NCBI GenBank assembly: GCA_977016875.1
Contig: CDRNST010000002.1
Span: 496,001-560,000 of the forward strand
DNA length: 64,000 nucleotides
Reading direction: 5' to 3'
Origin: Pavona decussata
Lineage: Eukaryota
Positions within the stretch are counted from its first letter, which is position 1. The number at the start of each line of letters is the position of its first letter. Positions 11,401-39,600 of the stretch are shown here, one piece after another. The notes beneath the pieces are model-generated. The model was not told the DNA's origin. It searched no databases and worked only from the letters and a program-made list of their open reading frames with translations. The translations under genes were made by a program, and so were the position numbers.

Positions 11401-14400
11401 GAAGACTTCGATCAGGACTATTCGAGCACAGGATCGCGCTGGCCGTCCTTGCCCGCAAACTTGAGAACAGGCGGAGCTAGTTTGACTGGTGTCCTTTTTC
11501 TTATGTCTGGTCGGGTCATGCAGTATAGTGGCGTGCATCTGCTTGCAAATCTTACATTCCAACTTGTCTCTTTTGCAGTCCTTCGAGACATGTTCGTTAG
11601 AGCTGACACATTTTAGGCAGATCCTGTTTTTCAACAAGAAATCTTTGCGCTCCTCATAGCTCAGTTTCTGAAACTGTTCACAGTCATTCATAGCATGAGA
11701 TTTCATCTTGTGATAGAAGCAATAAGTGTTAAGCTCCGCAGGGGTGCTAGGGTCTGGTTTCTGAGCTTCAGTTGCAAAAACATTCGATGTTTGGTTTAAC
11801 TCGACTGGAGAGGTTACTTCACTATCAAGTTCTGTGCCACGGGTGCTGGTTAAAGCACTGCCTGCAGATCGTTTACGAGGTGTACGGTTGGAGTTCTTAG
11901 AGCGGTCTGACTGTGTTGAGCTGCTCGCTCCTGAAGTGAGAGTGATCTGAGGAATGTTTGTCCGTTCAGCATGATAACGTATTTCCTGCACAAAGTTTTT
12001 AAAGGAGGGGAAAGCATCTTTGCCATTGCTTTTCTGAAGCTTTAGCACCTTGTCTGACCACTTGTTCTTGAACCAAGCAGGAAGTTTTTCAACGAGGCTT
12101 TGGATCTGTGACGGGTAGTTGAGAACTCCTAGGCCGCTCATGTGCTGACTTGCAATCTGAACTTGGTACAGAAAGTCACTAAATTCCTCTAAAGCAGCAG
12201 CGTCATATGGAGGAATCTTTGGCCAGTTCGCCAATCTTTTCTCAAAACTGGTACTAATAATCGCAGGATGACCAAACCGTTCCTTGAGAATTGTACGTGC
12301 TTGCTTGTACGCGCTGTCTGGGTCTTGAACAAGGTACTGCAGTTGTTCGATAACCCTTTTGGCTTTACCATCCAGATATTGGTATAATAAGTGCAGTTTC
12401 TGCTGGGCTGTAATAGGTATTGAATCGATTAAGCTGTCGAACGCGTTCTCCCACAGGAAGAACTTTGTTTGGTCTTGCTCATCTCCCTTAAACACATCCG
12501 ATTTAGCCTGCGGTAGACGTTGTAGCTGTGTCAATCTGGTTAAAGTGTCACTGAAATCTATCAGGTAATCTTGTGGTGGAAGGGTTTGAACTGGATCGGG
12601 TGATGGAATAAAAACTGGTGGATTTCAACAAAAGCCTCTTGAAGATGTGAGACCTGGTCTGTCCGTGTGGGGCGTGGCAAAGGTTGTTGGGACATTAGAT
12701 CCAAAGCTAGCTCTCGTGTTTGCACTGGTATAGACCGTTTTGCATGAAGAGGGCGTTGTGTACTGAGTTAGGGGGACCTGTGTTCCAAGGCTGAATCTAG
12801 TGTGTGTACTAGAATAAACTGTGTTACTGGTGGGAGACGTAAACATTGGTGAGGCACTTGCAGTTGGAAATGCTTGAAAATTCTGCGGTACTGAAGGAAC
12901 AAGTTCTGGTGTTGACGTAAGCCCTTCATTATTGTCCCTCAGGAAGGCGGGTATAGGATCGTACTGTTTGGTTGGCAGCAAGGGAGATTGAAAATCGTCC
13001 GCTTTGTCCTCTTCTTCCACAGCTTTCAGGTACACGGCCTCTTGCGCTCGGACTTCTCCAAGTTTCTTTTGAATTTTTAGCTGTTCTAACTTTTTCTCTT
13101 GCTCTGCGATGACTGTTGAAAACTTCAGTTTCTCTTCCAAGGCCACTCTTTTAGCTCTTACGTTTATCAGTGTGTCCCTGTGTGAACTTCCGCTTGATAC
13201 ACTTGACTTTCGCGAGTGACGAGATTTTTGAGAGAAAACAGAGTCATTGTCCTCTCGAACCTTCTTAATTTCATTTGCAGCTGTAGCACGAATGGACTTC
13301 CATGTATCCAGCAAATAGGCTTGCTTTTTGGTAGCACGCTGAATTTCAGTTGGGTCATCTGAAAGCTCTATCCACTCGTCAAATAATCGTAATGCATCAT
13401 TTACTTCCTTTGTAACAACGGTGATTTCAGTTTTAATTTTACTTGTGTCTTGACCAGAGTGTACTAATTCTTCGAAGCTACTCAGTCTTGCGTGTAATTC
13501 GCGATCTTTGGATAACGCGGCGGTTTTCTTCAAGCCACTTTGATACTCCCGGCCTTTGGCCGTGAGAGTCCTGGACCTCGTGTTTTCTTCCGGTATGTCA
13601 GTAATTTTACTCGACGAAATTTCAATTATTTTTGGACGCGGCGACGCATCTTCCAACGAAATAAAAGGCACATCACTAACCTCTGTTCCTGTTAAGGCGA
13701 CATTTTCTTTCGATGTTGTATTTGGCATGTCTCTAAGGTTGCTTGGTTTGATGAGGAATTCATCTGGTGTTAGTCCGATTCCAGTGTCACTTTGTTGATC
13801 TTGGTAATGTTTTTGTGAATCCATGTTTTTTTATCCGTGAGGAATTTCCAGTCTTTGACTGTGGCGACCGCTTTTCTTTCGAAGAAGGGCGCGCGGAAAC
13901 GACGATTACAAAGGCCAAAAGTCTAACATAATCCGTATCGGCTCTGTTTATTTTAAGTCACTAACTGAGATCAGGCGATCACCGAAAGGCAGAAAATCAA
14001 CAAACATACATACAGCTTGAGGTAGTCCTACTGTTGAACCGCATACAAGACCGTCAAAGACTGTAAGGCTACTAATCTGCACGGGTTGCGTGAGAAATTA
14101 CTGTCGCTTCGAGCGAAGCTAAAACCTAGTCAAGACGTTCAGCGACGTCTCAGCTCCACGTAGAGCTTTAACAGTCCCGTATGAAAAGGCGTCATGACAC
14201 GTGATGTGTCTCGTTGCGTAACGCAATGCCTAAACGGTTGAGAGGCCGTTACACAGTCATAGTATAATCAGGTTGCCAGTTCTTCTAATTCCCAAGCCTC
14301 ACTGATTCTAAGCGGTCTGGACTCCTCAGTTTTCCGAACAAAAATTTTCCCATCCACAGTCCAAACTCGATTGATCTTATAGGCTCTTTTCATTTTTCTT

Positions 14401-17400: not shown

Positions 17401-20400
17401 AGGGCTAACTAACATATATTGAAAAGAATAATAAATCGGCCGCCATTTATGAAAAAGGTCTATTAGTGTCATTTAAATTTTTTTAACTAATTACAAATGG
17501 TATTCGTTAGAGTTACAAAATCCTGTCTGCTTTAATTTGCGAAGGTATTAAGGTGACTTAAAGACTATTTACTTTATTTACTAAGACTATTGGTCTTACA
17601 AAACCAGTTTGCTTCATCCATTTAAGGTATTATTGTAACCAAAAGACTACAGCATTTAGCTAATTCACTAATATAAGGGTATTAAGAATTGCACATGCCT
17701 AACTACTTCATACAATAAGACATATATGTGACTTGTTACATTTAATTCATGTATGAAAGGTATTGGTGTGACAATAGAGCAAAGTATACTCTATATTCAT
17801 CAAAAGCATCAGACATTAGTGGATGAATAATGAATGAATTTCCTTTTTCGCATAAGAGTATCAAGTTAAATCATCAAAGAAATTAAATAGACAATTTACT
17901 AAAATTACCTAAAGATATTATTGTAACAAAAGTTTTTTTACTAAAACGGATACTTAATATAATCTCCAAAGGTGGTAGCGTCACTTAAGGTTATTTACTT
18001 CATTCATGAAAAGTTCAAAATAAAGGTACTGGCGTCACAAAAAAGTATTCACTTCATTCATTAAAGGATACTAGCGTCCCAAAAGTGTATTTGCTTCGTG
18101 CATCAAAGGTACAGTGTCACAAACGAGTACTTATTACGTTTACCAAAAGTATTAGTATCACATCAAAGTATTCAGTACGTTGATCAAAAAGTATAGTGTC
18201 ACATGGTAATATTCCTTTCTACGTTAAAACGACGGCTGTTGTCAGCGTTTTATAACATCGGAAGAAGCTTTCAATCTTGCTAAAGTTGCTATTTTGGCTT
18301 CATCCAAGCGAAAAGTAAATAGAGAAAAACGTCAAGCGTTTCGATGATTGTCCCTATGCATAAGCAAATTTTCAGTGATTACATTTGTTCTGGTGAAGCG
18401 ATCTTATCGCTCACACTGGACCCCGAATGATATTTACAATAGAGCAAAGTATACTCTATATTCATCAAAAGCATCAGACATTAGTGGATGAATAATGAAT
18501 GAATTTCCTTTTTCGCATAAGAGTATCAAGTTAAATCATCAAAGAAATTAAATAGACAATTTACTAAAATTACCTAAAGATATTATTGTAACAAAAGTTT
18601 TTTTACTAAAACGGATACTTAATATAATCTCCAAAGGTGGTAGCGTCACTTAAGGTTATTTACTTCATTCATGAAAAGTTCAAAATAAAGGTACTGGCGT
18701 CACAAAAAAGTATTCACTTCATTCATTAAAGGATACTAGCGTCCCAAAAGTGTATTTGCTTCGTGCATCAAAGGTACAGTGTCACAAACGAGTACTTATT
18801 ACGTTTACCAAAAGTATTAGTATCACATCAAAGTATTCAGTACGTTGATCAAAAAGTATAGTGTCACATGGTAATATTCCTTTCTACGTTAAAACGACGG
18901 CTGTTGTCAGCGTTTTATAACATCGGAAGAAGCTTTCAATCTTGCTAAAGTTGCTATTTTGGCTTCATCCAAGCGAAAAGTAAATAGAGAAAAACGTCAA
19001 GCGTTTCGATGATTGTCCCTATGCATAAGCAAATTTTCAGTGATTACATTTGTTCTGGTGAAGCGATCTTATCGCTCACACTGGACCCCGAATGATATTT
19101 ACTGCAAAGCTTAAGTTTTAGTTTCCTATTTTACCCTTCGCCTTTAACCCACGGACTTACCTTGAATATTTAAAGTTAATTAAACGTTTACATTTTGCGG
19201 CCGGAGATAGAAATGCGTCAAGTGTTGTGTTCGGCTGTATGTAAATAAGTGTTGACCTCCTGATCGTAACTGAGTCGATAACGTTTGACACCGAAGTAGA
19301 TTTATCGCACTGTGGAATTTCCTATTCTTTCAGTCATGTCGTTTACTTGGATTTTTGGGGTAAGCTCGTTTAAAGGTTTTCATGCTTACGTTTGATGTTT
19401 GCTGAAATGAGCAGTTCTGCCTATCGAAGTGCAGCCTCTCTCGCAGACGTTCTTTTGGCTCGTCACGCAATCGTTCCTCCCGAACGACACGAGCAATTTG
19501 CGAGGGAGGCGAATCGAAGTCGAACTCTTGGAAAATATCCGTCCTGAAAGAAAAGTTGCCCCTTAGTCTCCGTAAATGGAAGGATTTACCAGACACCACA
19601 CCTACTAGTTTTTTTCTTTTAAGAATACCTTTTTCGTTGAGTTGATTTTACGTCCTTCTTTTTCTTTTTCCCGTTATGGCGGCTAATGTAATATTAGCAC
19701 CCCAAAAAAGTATTTATTACATTAATTAAAGGTACTAACGTCACAAAAGAGTATTTACTTAGTTCATTAAAGATATTAGTGCCACGAAAAGAAAAAAAAA
19801 ACATCAAACGGGTATTTACTTAGTTCATCAAAGGTATTAGTGTAACAAAAAGGTATTTACTACATGAATTAAAGGTACTTGCGCCACAAAAGAGTATTTA
19901 CTTAGTTCATCAAAGGTACAAGCGTCACAAACGGGTATTTACTTAGTTCATCAAAGATATCGGTGACACAAAAAAGTATTTACTACCAACGTTAATTAAA
20001 GGTACTAGCGTCACAAAAGAGTATTTACTTAGTTCATCAAAGGTGCAAGCGTCACAAACAGGTATTTACCTAGTTCATCAAAGGTATTAGCGTCACAAAC
20101 GGGTATTTACTTAGTTTATTAAAGGTATTAGTGCCACAAAAAAGTATTTACTACGTTACTTAAAGGTACTAGCGTCACAAACGGGTATTAACTTAGTTCA
20201 TCAAAGGTACTAGCGTCACAAAAGAGTATTTACTTAGTTTATCAAAGGTATTTGTGTCACAAAAAATATTTACTACTTTAATTAAATTAAAGGTACTAGC
20301 GTCACAGCAGAGTACAAAAAGGTATAGTTAAGGTACAACTATCCAAAACGGGTATTTTCCTGATTCATTAAAAGATATTAGCGTCACAGAAATGAATTTA

Positions 20401-20612
20401 CTAGGTTCATAAAATGTAGTGTCACAAAAGAGTATTAGTACTAGTATTAAAGGTACTAGCGTCACAAACAGGTATTTACTTAGTTCATCAAGGTATTATT
20501 TAGTGTCACAAAAAAGTACTTACTACTATAATTAAATGAAAGTGAGAAGTGATCATCGCAGTGAATTTTCCAATTTATGCAATTGGAAATTGGAAGCCTG
20601 AAAAAAAATTCA

Positions 20613-20645
<33 letters not shown>

Positions 20646-20862
20646 GTTACCGGTGCGATGCTCTACCAACTGAGCTATGAAGCCACACATTGGGAGCAAG
20701 GTCAATTGTAGGTTCCCATTTTCCCGTGAGAGGAGTGAAACGATGTAAAGTATATGAAATAATTCATATATGAACTGCGGATATAGATGAAAGTGAGAAG
20801 TGATCATCGCAGTGAATTTTCCAATTTATGCAATTGGAAATTGGAAGCCTGAAAAAAATTCA

Positions 20863-20895
<33 letters not shown>

Positions 20896-21342
20896 GTTAC
20901 CGGTGCGATGCTCTACCAACTGAGCTATGAAGCCACACATTGGGAGCAAGGTCAATTGTAGGTTCCCATTTTCCCGTGAGAGGAGTGAAACGATGTAAAG
21001 TATATGAAATAATTCATATATGAAAGATGAAAGTGAGAAGTGATCATCGCAGTGAATTTTCCAATTTATGCAATTGGAAATTGGAAGCCTGAAAAAAATT
21101 CAGGCTTCAACGGGATTCGAACCCGTGAACTCCGCGTTACCGGTGCGATGCTCTACCAACTGAGCTATGAAGCCACACATTGGGAGCAAGGTCAATTGTA
21201 GGTTCCCATTTTCCCGTGAGAGGAGTGAAACGATGTAAAGTATATGAAATAATTCATATATGAAAGATGAAAGTGAGAAGTGATCATCGCAGTGAATTTT
21301 CCAATTTATGCAATTGGAAATTGGAAGCCTGAAAAAAATTCA

Positions 21343-21375
<33 letters not shown>

Positions 21376-21583
21376 GTTACCGGTGCGATGCTCTACCAAC
21401 TGAGCTATGAAGCCACACATTGGGAGCAAGGTCAATTGTAGGTTCCCATTTTCCCGTGAGAGGAGTGAAACGATGTAAAGTATATGAAATAATTCATATA
21501 TGAAAGATGAAAGTGAGAAGTGATCATCGCAGTGAATTTTCCAATTTATGCAATTGGAAATTGGAAGCCTGAAAAAAAATTCA

Positions 21584-21616
<33 letters not shown>

Positions 21617-24600
21617 GTTACCGGTGCGATGCTCTACCAACTGAGCTATGAAGCCACACATTGGGAGCAAGGTCAATTGTAGGTTCCCATTTTCCCGTGA
21701 GAGGAGTGAAACGATGTAAAGTATATGAAATAATTCATATATAACTATAATTAAAGGCACTTGCGTCACAAACGGGCATTTACTTTGTTCATCAAAGGCA
21801 TTACTGTCACAAAAAAGTATTTACTACGCTAATTAAAAATACTTGGGTCACAAACGGGAATTTACCTAGTTCATCAAAGGTACTAGCGTCACAAACAGGA
21901 ATTTACCTAGTTCATCAAAAGTAAGAGTGTCACAAACGGGTATTTACTTGGTTCATCAAAGGTATTAGTTTCACAAAAATATATTTACAAAGTTAATTTA
22001 AGGTACTTGCGCCACAAAAAAGTATTTACTTAGTTCATCAAAGGTACTAGCATCACAAACGTGTATTTACTTAGTCCATTAAAGTTACTAGCGTCAAAAA
22101 AGAGTATTTACTTAGTTCATCAAAGGTACTAGCGTCACAAAAGAGTTTATACTTAGTTCAGCAAAGTTACTAGCGTCACAAACGGGTATTTACTTAGCTT
22201 ATCAAAGGTATTATATTCACAAAAAAAGTATTTACTACGTTAATTAAAGGTACTAGAATCGCATACGGGTATTTACTTAGTTCATGAAAGGTATTAGTGT
22301 CACAAAAAAAGTATTTACTACATTAATTAAAAATACTAGCGTCACAAACGGGTGTTTACTTAGTTCACCAAAGGTACCATCGTCACAAAACGAGTATTTA
22401 CTTAGTTTATCAAAGATATTAGTGTCATAAAAAGGTATTTATTACGTTAATTAAAGATAAAAGCGTCACAAACGGGTATTTACTTGGTTCATCAAAGGTA
22501 TTAGTGTCACAAAAGAGTATTTACTATGTTAATTAAAGGTAAAAGCGTCACAAACGGGTATTTACTTAGTTCATTAAAAGTATTAGCGTCACAAACGGGT
22601 ATTTACTTCGTTAATCAAAGGTATTAGTGTCACCAAAAAACTATTTATTACGTTAGTTAAAGGTACAAATGTTACAAACGGGTATTTACTTAGTTCATCG
22701 AAGGTATTAGTGTCACAAAAAAGTATTTCCTACGTTATTTAAAGGTACAATCTTCACAAACGGGTATTTACTTAGTTTATCAAAAGTATTAGCGTCACAA
22801 ACAGGTATTTACTTAGTTCATGAAAGATATTAGTTTCACAAAAAAGTACTTCTCACGTTAATTAAAGGTACTAGCGTCACAAACGGATATTCACTTAGTT
22901 CATTAAAGGTAAAAGCGTCACAAACGGGTATTTACTTAGTTCATCAAAGGTAATAGTGTCACAAAAAAGTATTTACTTCGTTAATTAAAGGTAAAAGCGT
23001 CACAAACGGGTATTTACTTAGTTCATCAAAGGTAATAGTGTCACAAAAAAGTATTTACTACGTTAATTAAAGGTAAAAGCGTCACAAACGGGTATTTACT
23101 TAGTTCATCAAAGGTAATAGTGTCACAAAAAAGTATCTACTACGTTAATTAAAGGTAAAAGCGTCACAAACGGGTATTTACTTCGTTAATCAAAGGTATT
23201 AGTGTCACAAAAAAACTATTTATTGCGTTAGTTAAAGGTACAAACGTTACAAACGGGTATTTACTTAGTTCATCGAAGGTACCAGCGTCACAAACGGGTA
23301 TTTACTTGGTTCATCAAGGGTATTAGTGTCACAAAAGAGTATTTACTACGTTAATTAAAGGTACTAGCGTCACAAACGGGTACTTGCTTAGTTCATTAAA
23401 GGTACTAGCGCCACAAACGGGTATTTACTTAGCTAATCAAAGATATTAGTGTCATAATAAAGTATTTACTACGTTAATTAAAGGTACTAGCGTCACAAAC
23501 GGGTATTTACTTAGTTCATCAAAGGTACTAGCGTCACAAAAGGGTATTTACTTAGGACATCAAAGGTACTAGCGTCACAAAAGGGTATTTACTTAGGACA
23601 TCAAAGATATTAGTGTCACAATAAATTATTTACTTAGTTCATCAGAGGTATTTGCGTCACAAACGGGTATTTACTTGGTTCATTAAAGGTACTAGCGCCA
23701 CAAACAGGTATTTACTTAGCAAATCAAAGATATTAGTGTGAAAAAAAAACTATTTATTACGTTAGTTAAAGGTACAAACGTTACAAACGGGTATTTACTT
23801 AGTTCATCAAAGGTACTAGCGTCACAAAAGGGTATTTACTTAGGACATCAAAGATATTAGTGTCACAATAAATTATTTACTTAGTTCATCAGAGGTATTT
23901 GCGTCACAAACGGGTATTTACTTGGTTCATCAAAGGTATTAGTGTCACAAAAGAGTATTTACTATGTTAATTAAAGGCACTAGCGTCACAAACGGGTATT
24001 TGCTTAGTTCATAAAAGGTACTAGCACCACAAACGGGTATTTACTTAGCAAATCAAAGATATTAGTGTCACAAAAAAACTATTTATTACGTTAGTTAAAG
24101 GTACAAACGTTGAAAACGGGTATTTACTTAGTTCATCGAAGGTATTAGTGTCACAAAAAAGTATTTCCTACGTTATTTAAAGGTACAATCTTCACAAACG
24201 GGTACTTACTTAGTTTATCAAAAGTATTAGCGTCACAAACAGGTATTTACTTAGTTCATGAAAGATATTAGTTTCACAAAAAAGTACTTATCACGTTAAT
24301 TAAAGGTACTAGCGTCACAAACGGATATTTACTTAGTTCATTAAAGGTAAAAGCGTCACAAACGGGTATTTACTTAGTTCATCAAAGGTAATAGTGTCAC
24401 AGAAAAGTATTTACTACGTTAATTAAAGGTACAAGCGTCACAAAAGAGTATTTACTTTGTTCATCAAAAGTATTTGCGTCACAAACGGGTATTTATTTAG
24501 TTCATCAAAGATATTAGTGTCACAGAAAGGTATTTACTACGTTAATTAAAGGTACAAGCGTCACAAAAGAGTATTTACTTAGTTCATCAAAGGTACTAGA

Positions 24601-27600
24601 GTCACAATCAATTCAATTTTCCAATTCAATTTTTTTTAGTTTTTCACACGTACAACGAGATTCAATACAATACATATTACAAAGGAGGACTCAAAAGAAA
24701 TAGGATAAATTTGTTTGGTTTAGTGTGAGCAGTGCCTAAAGGAGCATGCTGCTTTCGAGTTGGGCACTGCTTACGATGGAAAAGAAAATTATTTCGGTGA
24801 AAGAGAAAATTATTTGGAAAGGTTTGGAAAAGAACAAGAGCGTGTTTAGTGAACGGATGACGGTGAAAAACTCTACATAACTTTTGGTTTATCAGCAAAT
24901 TTTTCCTGTATTTGGTTTTAAACGAAAAAGCGGAGTTTGATTGCTTAATGTTACAGTCTATTGTTTCCCATATCTGTGATGCTGCGAATCGAAATGTGTG
25001 TTTACCGTAGTTAGTACGTATTTTTAGTCTGCTAAAATTTTGTCGAGATGAAAATCAAGTATTGTACGAGTGCCGAGAGGATGCTGTGGAAATAAAGTTT
25101 GCAAAAACAAGACATATTTGATCATTTATTATTTTGAACGTGAAAATGGCAACCTTGAGTTTGAATGCATTGTCAATGGTTAGAATTCCCAGTAGATTGA
25201 AGTAAGCAGTAGCATTTTCTCTTTTGTGAGCAAAGAATATATTTTTTACACATTCGTTTTGGGCGGTGCAAATTTTGTTGAGATGGGTGGTGTAGGTGTT
25301 GCCCCAGCAAGTTGCCCTCGCTTTACCTGGTTCATCAAAGGTACTAGCGTCACAAACGGGTATTTACTTAGTTCGACAAAGGTACCAGCGTCACAAAAGA
25401 GTATTTACTTAGTTCGACAAAGGTACAAGCGTCAAAATCGGGTATTTAATTGGTTCATCAAAGGTACCAGCGTCACAAACGGGTATTTACTTAGTTCAAC
25501 AAAGGTACCAGCGTCACAAAAGAGTATTTACTTAGTTCGACAAAGGTACAAGCGTCAAAATCGGGTATTTAATTAGTTCATCAAAGGTACCAGCGTCACA
25601 AACGGGTATTTACTTAGTTCGACAAAGGTACAAGCGTCAAAATCGGGTATTTAATTAGTTCATCAAAGGTACTAGCGTCACAAACGGGTATTTACTTAGT
25701 TCGTCAAAGGTACTAGCGTCACAAACGGGTATTTACTTAGTTCATCAAAGGTATTAGTGTCTAAAAAAGTATTTGCTACTTTAATTAAAGGCACTTGCGT
25801 CACAAACGGGAACTTCCCTACTTCATCAAAGGCATTAGTGTCAAAAACGGGTATTTACCTAGTTCATCAAAGGTATTAGTGTCAAAAACGGGTATTTACT
25901 TAGTTCATCAAAGGAATTAGTGTCACAAAAAAGTATTTCCTACTTTGATTAAAGGTACTATTGTCACAAACGTGTATTTACTTAGTTCATCAAAGGTACC
26001 AGCGTCACAAACGGGTATTTCCTTAGTTCGTTAAAGGTACTAGCGTCACAAACGGGTATTTACTTGGTTCATCAAAGGTATTAGCGTCGCAAACGGGTAT
26101 TTACTTGGTTCATCAAAGGTATTAGTGTCACAAAAGAGTATTTACTACGTTAATTAAAGGTACTAGCGTCACAAACGGGTATTTGCTTAGTTCATTAAAG
26201 GTACTAGCGCCACAAACGGGTATTTACTTAGCTAATCAAAGATATTAGTGTCATAATAAAGTATTTATTACGTTAATTAAAGGTACTAGCGTCACAAACG
26301 GGTATTTACTTAGTTCATCAAAGGTACTAGCGTCACAAAAGGGTATTTACTTAGGAGATCAAAGATATTAGTGTCACAATAAATTATTTACTTAGTTCAT
26401 CAGAGGTATTTGCGTCACAAACGGGTATTTACTTGGTTCATTAAAGGTACTAGCGCCACAAACAGGTATTTACTTAGCAAATCAAAGATATTAGTGTGAA
26501 AAAAAAACTATTTATTACGTTAGTTAAAGGTACAAACGTTACAAACGGGTATTTACTTAGTTCATCAAAGGTACTAGCGTCACAAAAGGGTATTTACTTA
26601 GGACATCAAAGATATTAGTGTCACAATAAATTATTTACTTAGTTCATCAGAGGTATTTGCGTCACAAACGGGTATTTACTTGGTTCATTAAAGGTACTAG
26701 CGCCACAAACGGGTATTTACTTAGCAAATCAAAGATATTAGTGTGAAAAAAAAACTATTTATTACGTTAGTTAAAGGTACAAACGTTACAAACGGGTATT
26801 TACTTAGTTCATCGAAGGTATTAGTGTCACAAAAAAGTATTTCCTACGTTATTTAAAGGTACAATCTTCACAAACGGGTATTTACTTAGTTTATCAAAAG
26901 TATTAGCGTCACAAACAGGTATTTACTTAGTTCATGAAAGATATTAGTTTCACAAAAAAGTACTTATCACGTTAGTTAAAGGTACTAACGTCACAAATGG
27001 GTATTTACTTAGTTCATCAAAGGTATTAGTGTCACAGAAGAGCATTTACTTAGTTCATCAAAGGTATTAGTGTCACAAAAGAGTATTTACTTTGTTCATC
27101 AAAAGTATTTGCGTCACAAACGGGTATTTATTTAGTTCATCAAAGATATTAGTGTCACAGAAAAGTATTTACTACGTTAATTAAAGGTACAAGCGTCACA
27201 AAAGAGTATTTACTTAGTTCATCAAAGGTACTAGAGTCACAAACGGGTATTTACTTAGTTCATTAAAGGTAAAAGCGTCACAAACGGGTATTTACTTAGT
27301 TCATCAAAGGTAATAGTGTCACAAAAAAGTATTTACTACGTTAATTAAAGGTAAAAGCGTCACAAACGGGTTGTTGCGGTTTTTGTTAATTTACACTTTT
27401 CTATGTAGTTTTTGTTTTCCGCATCTTTATACGTGTTAATTGTGTCCTGCACCCTTCATTCCTTCCTGAACAATTTTTCGCACTATATGTAAATTCAGTG
27501 GTATATAATATTTTCAACACTTTCATTTTATCACTCACCCACCTAAATCCAGCAATTGGTAAGTGTTTTTTCAGTCGTCCTGTTTTTTGGTTTCAGTTGT

Positions 27601-30600
27601 CATTTTCGCGTTTATTCTTTTTATAGTCGTTCTTAGTTGTTTCCTGTACTTTCTCTGATAGGTATTTTACCAAATCCCTTGATTTGAGTGAATAAATTGC
27701 TGATTGAAACCTGTGAGTCTCTTCGTGGCCCTTGCCACTTCATTGTAAAATACCAATTGAAGATCATGGACGTTATCGAAGCTGATGATGCAAGTTCCAT
27801 CCGAGCGAGTTCCAGGAGTAGAATGCCTAATTCGCTGCAGGACCAAGAAGGAGTTGTACGCGAAAAGCTGAACAGTCTATAACGGTCTGCAGGAGGCTAT
27901 GTGGCCACAATGTCTAAAGTGTGCGCTCGAATTGATGATTTACTCGCGGACTTTGCTAACTTGGTGCAAGTGCGGAATCTGCAAGCCACCTTGTCAGATG
28001 CATTTAGGAATTATGGAGACAACGTCGCGCGGACCAAAGCTCTTCTCAATGACAGCAGCGTGGAACTTAACAAAATCCAGGGCGTTTACGAGGCTCAAGA
28101 GGTCAGAAAACGTCTGTATGATGAAAGGATCGAACATTTCGCGATCGAAGCTGCTTCGTATTTTAATAAACAAGTGTCAGAAGAATTACTCCGTGTCGAC
28201 ACTTCATCGCCTCGAGGATCGGTGAAATCGCAGAGCAGTCGAATTTCCAAGTTAAGTGCAGCGAGCTCGAGACTTCGCGAAGCCAAAATCGCGGCAGAAA
28301 AAGCGGCTCTATTCGAAAAACAAACTGAGCAAAAACGATCAAGGACAATAGCAATGAAAGTCAAGTTATTGGAGCTTGAAATGAAACAAAAGCAATTCGA
28401 ATTTCAACATCAACTAGAACTAGCGAAGCTCGACGCCGAGAAAGAGGCAGAGGAAGCCCGGGAAAGGACAGAGTTGGCAGATTTGGAGTTCAAGTTAGCA
28501 GAGCGCGAGTTTTCTTGTCTGCAGTTTGAGGAAAATCCACCTGAGCGGCATAGTTTTAACAGAAATATTGACATTGACGGAAACTTTACAAGCGTATCCG
28601 ACGCTGGTCCGCAAGTTGTCTACCCTCAAGCTGTTTCCACGCAATTAGGGTCGATAGCGCAGGTTTGCTCCACGCAGCCACTTTCTCCAACCACGTGTTC
28701 CGTCTCATCCACGAGAGTCTCGACCGGCCACGTCACGTCTTCGCGTGTCTCTGTTCTTCCCGACACGTCCTCGCGTGGATCAACGTTGCCTGCGCCCACT
28801 TCACGTTTTCCTGAATTTTCTGTCACGTCCTTTCAAGCCCCTGCAGTTCCCGTGGTGTCCTCGCGCGTCTCCTCGTTACCTGCGTACTCTACGTGTCTTA
28901 CAGATCTTCCACCCATGCCTACGTGTGCTCCCTTGCAAGCCTCTGCAGTTCCCGTGGTGTCCTCGCGCGTCTCCTCGTTACCTGCGTACTCTACGTGTCT
29001 TACAGATTTTCCACCCATGCCTACGTGTGCTCCCTTGCGAGCCTCTGCAGTTCCCGTGGTGTTCTCGCGCGTCTCCTCGTTACCTGCGTACTCTACGCGT
29101 CTTACAGATGTTCCACCCATGCCTACGTGTGCTTCCTTGCAAGCCTTTGCAGTTCCTGTGGTGTCCTCGCGCGTCTCCACGTTACCTGCGTACCCCACGT
29201 ATGTTCCTGATTTCCCACCGATGCCTACGCCTGCTTCTGTGGTTCCTGCTATGTCTGCCTCAACGTTGCCGTCTTCGTATGTTCCCGAGTCTTCGCGCGC
29301 TAGCTCGTGTGTTCCTGCCATGTACCCGGGTGTCTCCCTGTTCTCATCCCAGCCGCCCTACAATGCAGGTCCAATATTCACACATGCAGCTCAAGCCTAT
29401 GGTCCAGTTCGCCTGCCTTGTCATGCAACTTCAGGACATCTTCCACCTTCTCTTCAGCCAATGGGTGAAAGCTTCCTTGCAACTATTGCTACCACAATAG
29501 AAAGAATTAGTGCCGATCAAGGTCTACCTCCACTACAAGTGCTTAAGTTTGATGGCTCCCCTGAGAGATATCCACTATTCAGACAGAGGTTTCACCAGAT
29601 GGTAGAATCGAAGGCATTGGATGAACAGACTAAGATGGCTCGCCTGTTGCAGTTTCTCGAGGGCCCTGCTCTTAGAGCTGTGCAAAGGTACGAGGCTTTG
29701 TCAGGAGGTTTAACCAAGGCGTTAGAAGTCCTGCAAAGTCGTTTTGGTCAACCCTTTAAGATCGTAAGAGCTTGCGTCGACACTCTGACTAAAGGTCCCC
29801 CTATCGCATCTCAAGACAAGGATGGTCTCCAACGCTATGCAGATATGGCACAAGTCATGTATGATACCCTCGGATCTATGAACTGTTTAGGAGAAATGAA
29901 CACTGACAATCTCGAGAAAGTGATACTAAGGTTGCCCAAATGGCTCCAAGACAAGTTTCAAGAACATTTGAAGAAGCTTCAACGCCAAGGAAGAATTATC
30001 CCCACATTCAAAGACATTGTTGAGTTCCTGAATGACCGAGCTGATTTGGCTAATCATCCGTTTTTCACAACTTCTTCTGAGGTGAAGTCACACAAACGAA
30101 TTGAAGATCGAGACAAGTCTCATCTGCGTCACCTTACCACTCTTACCACAAGTACCTCTAGGGAGGCCAGCAGACTTGCGATCAATAAAGACACTAAAGC
30201 CAGCAACTGCCCCTTGTGTGTCCAGTACCACCCACTCTATCGCTGCGGGGTATTCAAGTCCAAGCCCGTCGAGGAGAGGAGGGCCTTAGTCAACAGAAAG
30301 CGGATTTGCTTCAACTGCATCAGCTCTACAGAACACACGGCCAGTTTGTCAAGTCGCAAATGCGTTGTAGGGTACCTGGTTGTGGAAGGTCTCACCACAC
30401 TTTGCTTCACCTGTCAGGTCCATCCCGAGAAAACGCTGATCATCACACTAACAACACTGAAGTCACAGTCATCCCAACCATGCCTACTGTCCTGCCAAGC
30501 GACCAAGATGCTCCCTCGAGCACGTGCGCTACTGCAACCTTGGCTGAATCCTCTGAGATTTACCTGCAGATCATGCCCCTCAAGATCATTGCCAACGATG

Positions 30601-33600
30601 GACGATATACAACCACTTACGGCTTGATCGACTCCGGCTCCGACGTCACTATGATTGACCCATCCCTCGTCGATCAGCTTGGTATTCAAGGCGAAGATGG
30701 ACAACTCCTACTTTCCACAGTAAGCCAAAGAGACAAACAGGAGAATGGAGTAAAGGTTGACTTCAAAATAGCGCCCGTTGATGATCAGCACTCACACCAG
30801 ATTACTGTGCGCAATGCATGGGCTGTACGAGACCTTACCATCCCGCTTAAGCATGTAACAGCTCGCAAGAAGATGGAGCAATGGTCGCACTTGTGTCAAG
30901 TCCCTTTTCCCGAAGTACAAAGAAAGAAGGTTTCTATCCTTATTGGAACGAACATCCAGGAAGCCTTTATTCCGTTGGAAGTTAGAAAAGGAAGTCCTAA
31001 TGAGCCCTTCGCGATACGATCCTGCCTTGGCTGGAGTATCCTTGGCGGTTCCGGCAGTGTAGACGGTAGACGTCAGTTTAACCTGCATCATGCTTCTTCT
31101 GAAGATGTTTCTCTCAACCGACAGTTGGAAGAATTCTGGCGAATTGAGTCCCACGGCACCGTGAAAGAAGCCTTTGGGCCAATGTCTGTTGAGGATCGAA
31201 AGGCGCTGAAGATAATAGAGAACACAATCTCTAAGGTTGACGGCCATTACCAGATGGGCCTTCTCTGGAGGCAGGAAGTACCCTACCTTCCATTTAACAG
31301 AGCCTTGGCAAAAGGTCGTCTTCAAGCTCTGAAAAGGAGATTTAACCGGGATCCTGGCCTAGAGGAAAAGTACCACTCCGTCATAGATGACTACGTTACT
31401 AAAGGTTATGCAAGACAGCTAAATGAAGAAGAGGCCTCTAAGAGATCCAAGATCACTTGGTACTTACCACACCACCCGGTGCTGAACATTAACAAGCCCA
31501 ACAAAGTACGCGTGGTATTTGACGCTGCCGCTAAATTTGATGGCACTTCCCTGAACGATCGGTTGTACCATGGCCCAGATCTCACAAATAATCTGGTTGG
31601 CGTGCTTATTCGCTTTCGAGAAGAAGAAACTGCGTTCACAGCTGACGTAGAGGCGATGTTCCATCAAGTCAAAGTTCTTCCAGAGGATGCAGACGCCCTA
31701 AGGTTCTTGTGGTGGAATGCTTCTTCAAATCTCCCTCCTAAGGAATATCAGATGCTTGTCCACATATTTGGCGCAACTTCATCCCCTTGCTGTGCCAACA
31801 AGGCACTTCGACAGACGGCAGACGATAATAAAGGCCGGTATAGCCCTGAAGCCATCAAGACCGTACACAGAAATTTCTACGTTGATGATGTACTGAAATC
31901 TGCGCCGACAACAGAGAAGGCGATTTGGCTAGTAGACCAGCTGACCAGGCTACTGAGTGAGGGCGGCTTCCACCTAACGAAGTTCACAAGCAACAGTAGG
32001 CAGGTGTTAAAGGCCCTCCCACTAGAGGAACGAGCGAATCCTTCTATCAATCTCGACCTCAGCCAACTTCCTATCAGCCGCGCACTTGGATTACACTGGG
32101 ATGCAGCTTCGGATACCTTGCAATTCAAGGTTGTTCCCACGAACAAGCCTCCAACTAAACGTGGCATTCTTTCGACTGTTAGTTCCCTATTCGATCCACT
32201 TGGTTTTTTGGGCCCGTTTCTCCTCCCAGTCAAAGTCATTCTTCAAGAACTATGGAGAATGGACGTCCAGTGGGATGACCCTATTCCAGAGCCTTTGCTA
32301 ACACAGTGGAATGGATGGGTAGAGTCTCTGCCCCTTGTTGCGAACATCAAGATTCCACGATGCTTCAAATCATTTTCTAGCACCCGAGTCATCACCGATG
32401 TTCAAATGCATTTTTTTCCTGACGCATCCAACAAGGGTTACGCTGCAGTTGGCTACTTAAGGCTCGTTGATGATATGGGAAAGGTCCATTGCGCCTTTGT
32501 TATGGGAAAGACCCGCAATTCCCCGCTGAAACAGTGGTCCATACCGCGTTTAGAGTTACAGTCAGCAGTGGTAGCTACACGCTTGCATTTACTGATACGC
32601 GACGAGCTTGACATACCCCTTCAAGGTGTTACGTTCTGGACAGACTCTTTGACGACCTTGCAGTACATTACGAACGAGAAGAGGCGATTCAAGCCATTCG
32701 TTGCTAATCGAGTGAACGAAATTCATGAAGCCTCGACTCCTCAGCAATGGCGACATGTGCCAACATCACTGAACCCAGCTGACGATGGTTCCAGAGGAAT
32801 GAAGCTACATGATCTTGACCCAAATTACCGCTGGCTCTCTGGCCCAAGTTTCCTCCTGAAGCCCGAAGAACATTGGCCAGTTAGAAGGGTTGGCAATATT
32901 CCAGAAGACGACAGTGAAGTTCAAGTTGAAAGAACCGTCATGGTGATTGACCGTGGATCATCACTGGACCTGCTTCTGCGTCGCTATTCATCTTGGCCTC
33001 GCCTCTTAACTCTTGTCGCCTGGTTGTTACGTTTCGTTAACCATGTTCAGAACAAAGGAACTTCTACTGAAAGAGGTGGAATATCCCTTTCAGAGATACG
33101 GTGCTCTTCCAAGAAAATTGTACAGTTGGTACAACGCCAAGCCTTTGCTGAAGAGATTGATTCCTTAGTCGAAGGTCATCCAGTTAAATGTCAAAGCAAG
33201 CTTGCAACTCTTCTTCCTGTACTCGTAGAAGGAACCGTGCGCGTGGGAGGAAGAATTCGTCACGCTCCTATCGCCTTCGAAGCTGCCCATCCGATGATAC
33301 TTCCTAAAGATCATCCAGTTTCTACCCTGATCGTGCGCTACTACCACGAAATCCTGGGGCATGCCGGTCGAGAGCACGTACTTTCCTTCATACGACAACA
33401 TTTCTGGATTATTCAAGCAAGGTCACTCGTGCGCCATGTTCTACGAAGATGCATCAGTTGTCGCAAGCGAAATGAAGTCCCCATGACTCAGTTGATGGCT
33501 GACCTGCCAAAGGAACGTCTCACTCCCTATGATCGGCCGTTCACCTACACAGGAGTCGACTTCTTTGGCCCATTCTACGTGAAGCGTGGTCGGAGTTCAG

Positions 33601-36600
33601 AAAAGGTGTACGGTTGCCTCTTTACCTGCCTTACCAGTCGCGCCGTGCATATAGAAGACGTGAGTTCATTAGAGTCCGATGCCTTTATTCAAGCCCTCCG
33701 CAGATTCATCTCGAATCGTGGGTGTCCCAAAGAAATCTGGAGTGATAACGGAACAAATTTCGTCGGAGCGGACAAGGAAATTCGCGACTCTATTCGTCAG
33801 TGGAATCAGGATGATCTAAACAAGCAACTGATTAAGGACGGGATTAACTGCTCCTTGTGCCCAATGTTCCAGTGGAAATTTCAGCCTCCAGCCGCGAGCC
33901 ATATGAATGGGGTCTGGGAACGGTTAATTCGAAGTGTGCGTAAGACCATGAAGGCGATCCTTGGCAATCCAGATGCGTTGGTTGGACTGGAAACCTTACG
34001 CACGGTCTTCGCAGAGGTTGTTACCATCCTCAACAGTCGCCCGCTTACTCCCAGCAGCGATGATCCAAGCGACCCGGAACCACTCACTCCGAACCACCTT
34101 CTGCTGCAACAGAAAGATCTTGCTCTGCCCCCAGGTCTGTTTGTTCGCGAAGATCTTTACAGAAGAAAACAATGGAGGAGAGCCCAATTCCTTGCTGACT
34201 ACTTCTGGAAACGGTGGCTAAGAGAATACGTTCCAGCTTTACAGCAACGCCAAAAATGGGTTCGCGAGAAAGGAAACTTGAAGGTCAATGATCTTGTAAT
34301 GCTTGTGGATGAAAATTCCCCTCGTGGAAGATGGCTCCTTGGCAGAGTTATGAAGATCTTTCCTGGCCACGACCAACGCGTCCGAGTTGGAGAAGTCAAA
34401 ACGAAGAATTCAACGCTTGTGAGGCCGATTTCAAAACTTGTATTGCTGGAAGAAGAAGATTAGTAACATTGACATTCGCCTACAGTTATTCTCAGAAACC
34501 TCTTGGACAGTTTGAATGCGCTAGTTCTAAGAACTTTCAGTGACTGATTAATTGATTCGCTTTTATTGCTGAATTTCCGCAAATTCAGCGAAGCCCCCCA
34601 GGATGTTGCGGTTTTTGTTAATTTACACTTTTCCATGTAGTTTTTGTTTTCCGCATCTTTATACGTGTTAATTGTGTCCTGCACCCTTCATTCCTTCCTG
34701 AACAATTTTTCGCACTATATGTAAATTCAGTGGTATATAATATTTTCAACACTTTCATTTTATCACTCACCCACCTAAATCCAGCAATTGGTAAGTGTTT
34801 TTTCAGTCATCCTGTTTTTTGGTTTCAGTTGTCATTTTCGCGTTTATTCTTTTTATAGTCGTTCTTAGTTGTTTCCTGTACTTTCTCTGATAGGTATTTT
34901 ACCAAATCCCTTGATTTGAGTGAATAAATTGCTGATTGAAACCTGTGAGTCTCTTCGTGGCCCTTGCCACTTCAGGGTATTTACTTAGTTCATTAAAAGT
35001 ATTAGCGTCACAAACGGGTATTTACTTAGTTCATGAAAGATATTAGTTTCACAAAAAAGTACTTATCACGTTAATTAAAGGTACTAGCGCCACAAAAGGA
35101 TATTTACTTAGTTCATTAACGGTAAAAGCGTCACAAACGGGTATTTACTTAGTTCATCAAAGGTAATAGTGTCACAAAAAAGTATTTACTACGTTAATTA
35201 AAGGTAAAAGCGTCACAAACGGGTATTTACTTAGTTTATCAAAAGTATTAGCGTCACAAACAGGTATTTACTTTGTTCATGAAAGATATTAGTTTCACAA
35301 AAAAGTACTTATCACGTTAATTAAAGGTACTAGCGTCACAAAAGGATATTTACTTAGTTCATTAAAGGTAAAAGCGTCACAAACGGGTATTTACTTAGTT
35401 CATCAAAGGTAATAGTGTCACAAAAAAGTATTTACTACGTTAATTAAAGGTAAAAGCGTCACAAACGGGTATTTACTTAGTTCATCAAAGGTAATAGTGT
35501 CACAAAAAAGTATTTACTACGTTAATTAAAGGTAGAAGCGTCACAAACGGGTATTTACTTAGTTCATGAAAAGTATTAGCGTCACAAACGGGTATTTACT
35601 TCGTTAATCAAAGGTATAAGTGTCACAAAAAAACTATTTATTACGTTAGTTAAAGGTACAAACGTTACAAACGGGTATTTACTTAGTTTATCAAAAGTAT
35701 TAGCGTCACAAACAGGTATTTACTTAGTTCATGAAAGATATTAGTTTCACAAAAAAGTACTTATCACGTTAGTTAAAGGTACTAGTGTCACAAAAGGATA
35801 TTTACTTAGTTCATTAAAGGTATTAGTGTCACAGAAGAGTATTTACTTAGTTCATCAAAGGTATAAGTGTCACAGAAGAGTATTTACTTTGTTCATCAAA
35901 GGTATTAGTGTCACAAAAAAACTATTTATTACGTTAGTTAAAGGTACAAACGTTACAAACGGGTATTTACTTAGTTCTTCGAAGGTATTAGTGTCACAAA
36001 AAAGTATTTCCTACTTTATTTAAAGGTACAATCTTCACAAACGGGTACTTACTTAGTTTATCAAAAGTATTAGCGTCACAAACAGGTATTTACTTAGTTC
36101 ATGAAAGATATTAGTTTCACAAAAAAGTACTTATCACGTTAATTAAAGGTACTAGCGTCACAAAAGGATATTTACTTAGTTCATTAAAGGTAAAAGCGTC
36201 ACAAACGGGTATTTACTTAGTTCATCAAAGGTATTAGCGTCACAAACGGGTATTTACTTCGTTAATCAAAGGTATTAGTGTCACAAAAAAACTATTTATT
36301 ACGTTAGTTAAAGGTACAAACGTTACAAACGGGTATTTACTTAGTTCTTCGAAGGTATTAGTGTCACAAAAAAGTATTTCCTACTTTATTTAAAGGTACA
36401 ATCTTCACAAACGGGTACTTACTTAGTTTATCAAAAGTATTAGCGTCACAAACAGGTATTTACTTAGTTCATGAAAGATATTAGTTTCACAAAAAAGTAC
36501 TTATCACGTTAGTTAAAGGTACTAGTGTCACAAAAGGATATTTACTTAGTTCATTAAAGGTATTAGTGTCACAGAAGAGTATTTACTTAGTTCATCAAAG

Positions 36601-39600
36601 GTATAAGTGTCACAGAAGAGTATTTACTTTGTTCATCAAAGGTATTAGTGTCACAAAAGAGTATTTACTTTGTTCATCAAAAGTATTTGCGTCACAAACG
36701 GGTATTTATTTAGTTCATCAAAGATATTAGTGTCACAGAAAAGTATTTACTATGTTAATTAAAGGTACAAGCGTCTCAAATGAGTATTTACTTAGTTCAT
36801 CAAAGGTATTAGTGTCACAGAAGAGTATTTACTTAGTTCATCAAAGGTATTAGTGTCACAAAAGAGTATTTACTTTGTTCATCAAAAGTATTTGCGTCAC
36901 AAACGGGTATTTATTTAGTTCATCAAAGATATTAGTGTCACAGAAAAGTATTTACTATGTTAATTAAAGGTACAAGCGTCTCAAAAGAGTATTTACTTAG
37001 TTCATCAAAGGTACTAGAGTCACAATCAATTCAATTTTCCAATTCAATTTTGTTTTAATTTTTCACACGTACAACGAGATTCAATACAATTGATAAAAAA
37101 AATATATTAGATTATATTAGAAAGGAGGATTAAAAAGAATTAGGATAAATTTCTCTGGTTTAGTGTGAGCAGTGCCCAAAGGAGCATGCTGCTTTCGAGT
37201 TGGGCACTGCTTACGATGGAAGAGAAAATTATTTCGGTGGAAGAGAAAATTATTTGAAAAGGTTTAAAAAAGAAAAAGAGCGCGTTTAGCGAACGGATGA
37301 CGGTGAAGAACTCTACATTACTTTTGGTTTATAAGCAAATTTTTCCTGTATTTGGTTTTAAACGAAAAAGCGGAGTTTGATTGCTTAATGTTACAGTCAG
37401 TATTGTTTCCCATATTTGTGATGCTGCGAATTGAAAAGTGTGTTTACCGTAGTTTGTACGTATTTTTGGTCTGCTAAAATTTTGTCGAGATGAAAATCGG
37501 GTATTGTACGAGTGCCGAGAGGATGCTGTGGAAATAGAGTTTGCAAAAACAGGACATATTTGATCATTTATTATTTTGAACGTGAAAATGGCAACCTTGA
37601 GTTTGAATGCATTGTCAATGGTTAGAAATCCCAGTAGATTGAAGTAAGCAGTAGCATTTTCTTTTGGTGAGCAAAGAATATACTTTTTACACATTTGTTT
37701 TGGGCGGTGCGAATTTTGTTGAGATGGGTGGCGTAGGTGTTGCCTCAGCTAGTTGCCCTCGCTACAATCGGGTATTTACTTAGTTCATCAAAAGTACCAA
37801 CGTCACAAAAGGGTATTTACTTAGTTCGTCAAAGGTACTAGCGTCAAAATCGGGTATTTACTTAGTTCATCAAAGGTACTAGCGTCACAAACGGGTATTT
37901 ACTTAGTTCGTCAAAGGTTCTAGCGTCACAAACGGGTATTTACTTAGTTCATCAAAGGTATTAGTGTCACAAAAAAGTATTTTCTACGTTAATTAATGAT
38001 ACTAGCGTCACAAACGGGTATTTACGTAGTTCATCAAAGGTACTAGCGTCACAAACGGGTATTTACTTAGTTCATCAAAGGTATGAGTGTCCCAAAAAAG
38101 TATTCACTATAAGTTAATTAATGATACTAGCGTCACAAACGGGTATCTACTTAGTTCATCAAAGTTATTAGTGTCACAAAAAAGTATTAACTACTTTAAT
38201 TAAAGGTACTATCGTCACAACAGAGTATAAAAAGGTATAGTTAAGGTACAACTGTCCAAAAAGGGTATTTTCCTCATTGATTAAAAGGCATTAGCGTCAC
38301 AGAAATGTATTCACTACGTTCGCCAAATGTACAGTCTCACAATACAGTATTTAGTTCGTTCAAAGGTATTAACGTCCACAGAATAATATTTACTACGTTC
38401 ATCAATGGTACAGTGTCACAAAAGGGGATTTAGTTCGTTCGTCAAAGGTACTAACGTCACAAAAGGGTATTTAGTTCGTTCGTCAAAGGTACTAGCGTCA
38501 CAAAAGGGTATTTAGTTCGTTCGTCAAAGGTACTAGCGTCACAAAAGGGTATTTAGTTCGTTCGTCAAAGGTACTAGCGTCACAAAAGGGTATTTAGTTC
38601 GTTCGTCAAAGGTACTAGCGTCACAAAAGGGTATTTAGTTCGTTCGTCAAAGGTACTAGCGTCACAAAAGGGGATTTAGTTCGTTCGTCAAAGGTACTAG
38701 CGTCACAAAAGGAGATTTTGCTTCATTCACTAAAGGTACAGCGCCACAAAAGGGTATTCACTTCATGAAAGATATGTTTACGTTTCGTTCCGTTAATTAC
38801 AGCTTAGGTGCAATTAATTCGGGAAGTATGACTGTTTGCACCCGATGCAAAAGAAAGAAAGGAAATTGCGGTGAAAGATAACAAATATGTAACTGGATTT
38901 TAATTTATATAATCATAAAAAAAATTATTGTTTAAGACTAAATGTGTGAGTTTAGCTAAGGTGAATAATCACTTAACGGTTATTTAACAGTGATTTTCAG
39001 CTCTTATTTTTTATATATTTTTGTGGGGCTGTATTTTATTTTATTCAAACGTTTGAATTTATGGGGGAATGGATGAAACTGAAATATACAATCTTTCAGG
39101 AACGGGTCTTTATCCTCCAACCCTGAAACTGTGCTGTTACACAGTTCAAGTCATGAGTCTTTGAAAAGAACCTGCTGCAGAAGCTGTGAATGAAAACCTA
39201 GTCACTGCATAAAAATATGTCGAATGGCTTGACATTTACAATGCGATAAATGGTACGGGCTTAACATTCACGAAGTGATTACTCATTTTTGTGCACAAGC
39301 ATTAACCTGTAGCGGACTGGTTGACAAATTAACTCGAATATTAACAAACGACAATTCAAAGAACAACAGCAACAGGACCAACAAAAAGGCACTTCTAACT
39401 AGCGGACGGTTGAGCCAACGAAAAACAAGAATGTCATTTCGATTGTCACTTTTTTACATGTGCAGACTTTCTGAGTCCCAAGTTTGAGGGCAGTTTGTTC
39501 ATATCAACATCTTATACTAATATGAATTTATTTTTGCATCAAATATTCCACCGCAGAAAAAAGTAGAATTGGCGAGCATTAATACGGAAATATTAGTTGG

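Follow-up and report, generated by a model that had tools for sequence, protein, structure and literature searches.

The stretch of DNA analysed here (the window) comprises 64,000 nucleotides from Pavona decussata, positions 496,001 to 560,000 of contig CDRNST010000002.1 (assembly GCA_977016875.1), and all coordinates given below are counted from its first base. On the forward strand, at 27372-34974, lies a young BEL/Pao long terminal repeat (LTR) retrotransposon, referred to here as element 2, whose primer-binding site (PBS) is complementary to a sequence in its own 5′ LTR that is interrupted by a 103-nt intron-like segment. Alignment of both LTR ends delimited a 371-bp 5′ LTR (27372-27742), which begins with TGTTG and ends with TTCA, a 3′ LTR of the same length (34604-34974) that differs from it at 3 positions (99.2% identity), and a target-site duplication (TSD) of GGGT at 27368-27371 and 34975-34978. 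The 3′ LTR carries its own copy of the 103-nt segment (34791-34893), which starts 327 nt past the pol stop codon.

Domain searches identified a gag open reading frame (ORF) with DUF1759 (27910-30627) and a pol ORF (30216-34463) encoding an aspartic protease, reverse transcriptase (RT), Peptidase_A17, integrase and DUF5641, both on the forward strand. Within pol, Asp_protease_2 was found at 134-188, RVT_1 at 466-587, Peptidase_A17 at 647-811 (1.2e-46), Integrase_H2C2 and rve at 1037-1192 and DUF5641 at 1318-1411. Element 2 thus shows the protease, RT, A17/RNase H and integrase order of the BEL/Pao superfamily, together with its DUF1759 gag, TG..CA LTRs and a TSD in the 4-6-bp range. The 602-Mb genome holds at least 22 full-length copies of the element 2 family with LTR identities of 96-100%, and a Peptidase_A17 profile search of the same genome returned more than 1400 candidates. 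Between the PBS and gag, a short upstream ORF of 37 codons (27767-27880) begins 8 nt after the PBS and stops short of the gag start codon at 27910; the region around the ATG of this short ORF is conserved across copies of the family. The whole element sits inside a large array of a 41-bp satellite (approximately 19690-27371 and 34975-38775), the repeat unit of which continues in both flanks, and five tandem tRNA-Thr(GGT) genes with a 240-bp period are found between blocks of this satellite at 20612-21655.

A split complement at the primer-binding site

The first-pass annotation of this DNA had claimed that splicing of the LTR would create a perfect 15-nt complement at the position of the PBS, and this was borne out: 27553-27558 joined to 27662-27670 is the exact reverse complement of 27745-27759 (15 of 15 positions). 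The exon-1 half of the putative primer, CAATTG (27553-27558), is preceded by a CCAG motif that is kept across families and pairs with 27754-27759, whereas the exon-2 half, GTATTTTAC (27662-27670), pairs with 27745-27753 and ends at the predicted 3′ end of the primer, 27670. The PBS itself, GTAAAATACCAATTG (27745-27759), is separated from the last base of the 5′ LTR by a 2-nt spacer, TT (27743-27744; TC or TT in relatives), which is the usual PBS location. The 103-nt segment between the two halves (27559-27661) reads CAATTG|GTAAGT at the donor and ends in a T-rich tract followed by GATAG|G at the acceptor. Upstream of it, as also described in the first-pass annotation, lies a TATA-like box, TATATAA (27502-27508), to which a promoter function can be assigned only putatively, followed approximately 30 nt further 3′ by a putative initiator-like (Inr-like) TCACT (27531-27535). 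An AATAAA polyadenylation signal, which is also kept in a sister family described below (family B), is found in exon 2 at 27691-27696. The TATA-like box upstream and the AATAAA downstream place both the primer and the 103-nt segment in the repeated (R) region of the LTR.

The match available to unspliced RNA had been given as 10 nt only. This holds for the exon-2 side, where 27661-27670 is complementary to 27745-27754 if the last G of the intron is counted, but a second partial complement of 9 nt exists on the exon-1 side (27553-27561 with 27751-27759). Complements of the length seen after joining are rare by chance: of 3000 dinucleotide-preserving shuffles of the LTR, only one gave a 15-nt complement across a junction, and among 294 control windows from the interior of element 2 the longest such match was 12 nt.

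A matching host tRNA, which would offer another primer, was also sought and none was found. No TGG, as would mark a TGG-type PBS, lies within the first 25 nt past the LTR; no tRNA gene lies at any other occurrence of the 15-mer in the 602-Mb genome, these being only family copies and a few unrelated repeats; and an Rfam search of 27300-27950 gave no match. By genome occurrences and Rfam, therefore, element 2 resembles Tf1-type elements in having a PBS that does not correspond to a tRNA 3′ end.

A second BEL/Pao element in the window, element 1, lies on the minus strand at 6713-14253 (LTRs at 14253-13860 and 7106-6713, TSD GACTG), and its pol is 36% identical to that of element 2. It carries a contiguous 11-nt complement between 14063-14053 in the LTR and 13859-13849, starting with the first base after the LTR, and matches of at least 11 nt were obtained in 4 of 3000 shuffles. 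The resulting helix is present in both the minimum free energy (MFE) and centroid folds, and its predicted duplex energy of -15.3 kcal/mol is similar to that of the joined helix of element 2 (-17.1 kcal/mol). The LTR-to-PBS complement of element 1 is independent of that of element 2 and constitutes a parallel case from the same superfamily and host, with a PBS directly after the LTR that is complementary to an internal LTR site, but with a contiguous primer and no intron.

Precise and recurrent loss of the 103-nt segment

The genome was searched for exact matches to the PBS 15-mer of the window, which gave 38 matches, mostly PBSs of family copies. On contigs C114, C200 and C294, the reverse complement of the PBS also lies 89 nt 5′ of it, the distance that would be left if the 103 nt were missing. 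A natural intronless LTR was then used as a genome query, and intronless LTRs were recovered from C200 and C294 (both LTRs in each case), C114 and C332, the segment being missing exactly and every LTR being joined at CAATTG|GTATTTTAC. These copies are genuine insertions. The C200 insertion has an LTR pair of 99.3% identity and a TSD of TGAAG, the LTR pair of C294 is 99.6% identical, and the C332 sequence is an intronless 3′ LTR with a polypurine tract in front. It was observed separately that the expected polypurine tract of element 2 (34586-34603, before the 3′ LTR) holds a run of six Cs (GAAGCCCCCCAGGA), unusual for such a tract, and that CCCCAGGA likewise precedes the C332 LTR. The old C114 copy (L065, about 1490-1501) is inserted beside telomere-like TTAGGG repeats.

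The 103-nt sequence is confined to LTRs of the element 2 family (approximately 63 candidates in the genome), and the possibility that it is an independent mobile insertion was rejected on this ground. A tree of the copies, constructed from 1.4 kb 3′ of the PBS, placed C200 and C294 inside the intron-bearing clade (support 95/92 and 100/99), whereas C114 falls outside it. C123, which is as distant as C114, keeps the segment with GTAAGT and TTAG intact. A single clade of the three intronless copies was 98 log-likelihood units worse and was rejected by the approximately unbiased (AU) test (p-AU = 9e-15). Moreover, the C294 LTR is approximately 97-99% identical to the window LTR on either side of the junction, and since it matches the main clade on both sides it was not imported from the C114 lineage. 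The intronless copies are therefore not of single origin, and precise loss has recurred: at least two losses can be counted in the family of element 2, and one more in family B. Recurrent loss that is precise to the base at GT..AG borders is what splicing and subsequent reverse transcription leave behind, so that, as read from these genomic copies, the 103-nt segment behaves as a real spliceosomal intron.

The signals themselves are of the U2 type (5′ splice site, pyrimidine tract and YAG 3′ splice site). Across 7 diverged introns, G|GTAAG and TAG| are invariant, whereas the interiors are T-rich and drift. RNAalifold predicted no conserved pairs within the intron, only GTAAG, TAG and T-richness being invariant.

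Primer and PBS in sister families

To identify relatives, metagenome contigs from JGI were scanned with an alignment of gag, which gave 15 loci; a scan of viral contigs found no relative. The DNA 5′ of gag in these loci was scanned in an unbiased manner for complements that were either contiguous or split by GT..AG, and was also aligned. The gag sequences of the sister families are 37-52% identical to that of element 2 over long alignments, and a sister-family LTR had no match in the genome studied here; both observations indicate that the metagenome loci probably come from other hosts. Most of the contigs carry just one LTR. L102, the only locus that has DNA 5′ of gag yet lacks the feature, was rejected as a relative without it, because it is 5′-truncated in the leader, with homology starting 66 nt before gag.

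The sister families share one order of features with element 2: CCAG, the first half of the primer, G|GTAAG, 75-99 nt, YAG|G and the second half of the primer, followed by AATAAA, an LTR end of the form ..CTTCA, a 2-nt spacer and the PBS. The first-pass annotation had proposed that related families might keep the intron with compensatory changes across the junction and the PBS, and this is what was found. In element 2 (the window and family copies), CAATTG|GTATTTTAC faces the PBS GTAAAATACCAATTG over 15 of 15 positions; in family B (L091, L096, L100, L101 and L104), CATTTTG|GAATTTAC faces GTAAATTCCAAAATG over 15 of 15; and in family C (L093 and L103, with the PBS also present in L099 and L105), CATTTG|GAATTTAC faces GTAAATTCCAAATG over 14 of 14. 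Families B and C are approximately 82% identical in DNA; within family C, L093 and L103 show 76-79% identity. When the 15 primer positions of family B are set in register against those of element 2, four differ (two in exon 1 and two in exon 2); all four are transversions, and each is mirrored in the PBS. Family C differs from family B by a 1-nt indel, a single T in exon 1, which is matched by a single A in the PBS. No G-U pairs and no mismatches between primer and PBS were found in intact copies. As judged from these alignments, primer and PBS change together across diverged families.

Three loci of family B differ from the common pattern in other ways. L094 lacks the intron, has a contiguous primer of 14 nt and represents another independent loss. 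L104 has an intron of only 75 nt (4943-5017), which arose by an internal 24-nt deletion and retains intact splice sites and the 15/15 match. In L096, two LTR copies (1-263 and 5209-5524) lie 5.4 kb apart, indicating an element shorter than element 2, and the 3′ copy also holds exon 1 and the start of the intron.

In retroviruses, the PBS portion of the plus strand is made by copying the primer RNA. Exact mirroring without wobble is expected if the PBS is rewritten in this way during plus-strand synthesis, whereas a helix evolving by stepwise compensation should leave intermediates such as wobble pairs. Furthermore, if the letters of exon 1 reach the PBS by copying of the primer, exons 1 and 2 must be contiguous in that primer.

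Probable priming from spliced RNA

Self-priming has been described in the Tf1/sushi group of Ty3/gypsy chromoviruses and has also been predicted for Tcn1 and for the copia-type TAR/Houba elements (PMC6317226). We consider it likely, though well short of certain, that element 2 primes its own minus strand as Tf1 does, with a primer split by a spliceosomal intron in R. Element 2 and the Tf1/sushi elements have several features in common: neither has a tRNA PBS, a stretch of the 5′ leader within R is complementary to a PBS beside the 5′ LTR, and primer and PBS covary among relatives (three primer/PBS versions in the present case). In both, whatever lies 5′ of the primer would be regained from the 3′ R. 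Element 2, however, has the domain set of BEL/Pao and stands outside the Tf1/sushi chromovirus clade. The Tf1 primer is contiguous and 11 nt long, whereas that of element 2 and its sisters is 14-15 nt long and interrupted by an intron. In addition, Tf1 takes its primer from the first nucleotides of the transcript, whereas the primer of element 2 may lie further in.

By analogy with Tf1, removal of the 5′ intron would yield a leader with 15 contiguous nucleotides, CAATTG joined to GTATTTTAC, which would fold back onto the PBS 2 nt past the LTR. The RNase H of the RT would then cut after 27670 to leave a 3′-OH, which the RT would extend through U5 and the rest of R, from 27744 back to 27671. The resulting short DNA would jump to the 3′ R, and synthesis along the 3′ LTR would restore the primer region, the intron and U3. 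We infer that spliced rather than unspliced RNA provides the primer, as well as the sites of cleavage and of transcription start. Under such a scheme, sequence upstream of the cut, the intron included, is recopied from the 3′ LTR, so that splicing of the 5′ copy costs the lineage nothing, whereas splicing of the 3′ copy, whose state is the one inherited, gives intronless progeny. The earlier suggestion that the intron persists by recopying from the 3′ LTR portion of the RNA therefore follows from Tf1-type priming and fits the data. Inheritance of the 3′ state alone would explain why intron-bearing copies dominate despite splicing while intronless lineages keep arising. The sister copies C200 and C294 indicate that intronless elements have transposed and hence that the contiguous form of the primer is competent. 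The rarity of intronless lineages may reflect intron-dependent expression or the loss of control over the timing of priming, both of which are possible causes.

Where transcription starts bears on this scheme. The spacing of the TATA-like box and a TCA motif of the initiator type suggest a start approximately 20 nt before the primer, near 27533. On the other hand, the 5′ limit of the complement is sharp and falls on the same CA following CCAG in all lineages, which, taken with the logic of primer copying, would put the start at the first base of the primer (27553) and leave a first exon of 6-7 nt.

Several observations weigh against self-priming from spliced RNA. Either start is awkward, since one near 27533 would give the primer a 5′ overhang, absent from that of Tf1, which complicates plus-strand transfer, and one at 27553 would give a first exon of only 6 nt, very short for splicing. 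The scheme needs RNA that is spliced at the 5′ copy of the intron and unspliced at an identical 3′ copy, and the existence and transposition of intronless copies mean that the intron is not essential. When the spliced state was examined on natural intronless copies (L062, L055 and L094), the 15-bp helix of the natural intronless leader was not the MFE structure but lay 2.4 kcal/mol above it, with a predicted probability of 0.06. Finally, in unspliced RNA of families B and C, pairing between the PBS and the exon-2 half on its own has a predicted probability of up to 0.99. Folding z-scores of the whole leader were unremarkable (-0.68 for unspliced element 2 and 0.38 for element 1) and were not used as evidence.

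The last of these points would suit a scheme in which unspliced RNA primes itself, the intron being looped out while each half pairs with its part of the PBS to form a three-way junction; splicing would then be a side reaction or serve expression only, and the intronless copies would stem from occasional packaging of spliced RNA. Such a scheme also predicts covariation of both halves with the PBS, and retroviruses normally package unspliced RNA. It is nevertheless rated as unlikely. Pairing of both halves at once in unspliced RNA was predicted to lie 6-14 kcal/mol above the MFE at every intron-bearing locus (9 of 9), and the separate halves have predicted duplex energies of -9.3 and -6.7 kcal/mol. 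In element 2, the exon-2 half is weak (-6.7 kcal/mol, pairing probability 0.002). The intron has no conserved structure, with just its splice signals invariant, and copying of an unspliced primer would put intron letters beside those of exon 2 in the PBS, yet the exon-1 changes are mirrored exactly.

A role outside priming was judged still more improbable. The complementarity could serve to circularise the leader in packaging or in the control of translation, with a host RNA such as a tRNA fragment as the true primer. In unspliced element 2, the exon-1/5′ splice-site region (27553-27561, CAAUUGGUA) is predicted to pair with 27751-27759, in the 3′ half of the PBS, with a probability of approximately 0.48; such a helix might just as well have a regulatory role, and in the folding model it could mask the donor or compete with splicing. 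Against this stand the position of the complement, which in both elements of the window and in both sister families begins 0-2 nt past the LTR end, the results that gave no host candidate (no TGG, no tRNA gene at the other 15-mer sites and no Rfam match), and the all-Watson-Crick mirroring, which suits a copied primer better than a helix under selection. As for chance, or a 103-bp insertion that merely resembles an intron, the sequence is AT-rich, 1 of the 3000 shuffles did reach 15 nt and both ends of the segment carry a GTA triplet, but the segment is confined to LTRs of the family, its loss is precise and recurrent, and the same architecture recurs with other letters in families B and C, which effectively refute this reading already; we give it next to no weight.

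Self-priming from spliced RNA remains the preferred account, and under it splicing may act as a licence or switch, as had been proposed, instead of merely being tolerated. More tentatively, and with somewhat less than even confidence, reverse transcription in this BEL/Pao clade may be gated by splicing, in that a complete primer would exist only after removal of the cap-proximal intron, while the identical 3′ copy would have to stay unspliced to be passed on (perhaps enforced by nonsense-mediated decay, a spliced junction there being 327 nt past the pol stop) and the transcript may start at the first base of the primer.

Compared with tRNA-primed BEL/Pao elements and retroviruses, element 2 has the same LTR-PBS-gag-pol-polypurine tract-LTR layout with a PBS 0-3 nt after U5, but its PBS lacks TGG and matches its own spliced leader. 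Splice signals in or near LTRs are familiar from other retroelements: Ogre has an intron between protease and RT, and deltaretroviruses and foamy viruses have a donor in R. Like element 2, these elements carry host spliceosome signals within their genomic RNA; unlike in element 2, splicing there makes subgenomic or coding mRNAs, and we know of no complete intron in an LTR of these elements and of no exon junction used by them as an RT primer. Beyond the Tf1/sushi group, self-priming is known from a few lineages in plants. A search of open-access literature found no report of self-priming in BEL/Pao, no complete intron in an LTR and no RT primer assembled by splicing. What is new here is the intron-split primer.

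If this reading is true, reverse transcription would be tied to RNA splicing. Were the spliced junction the primer, the element would read the state of host RNA processing before DNA synthesis, a new checkpoint in retroelement replication. It would also resolve the paradox of how an intron survives in an element copied through RNA, since the 5′ copy would never be a template and only the 3′ copy would be inherited. LTR annotation tools that seek only tRNA PBSs would miss the primer site in such elements, and the repeated birth of rare intronless lineages offers a natural experiment on the value of an intron for retroelement fitness.

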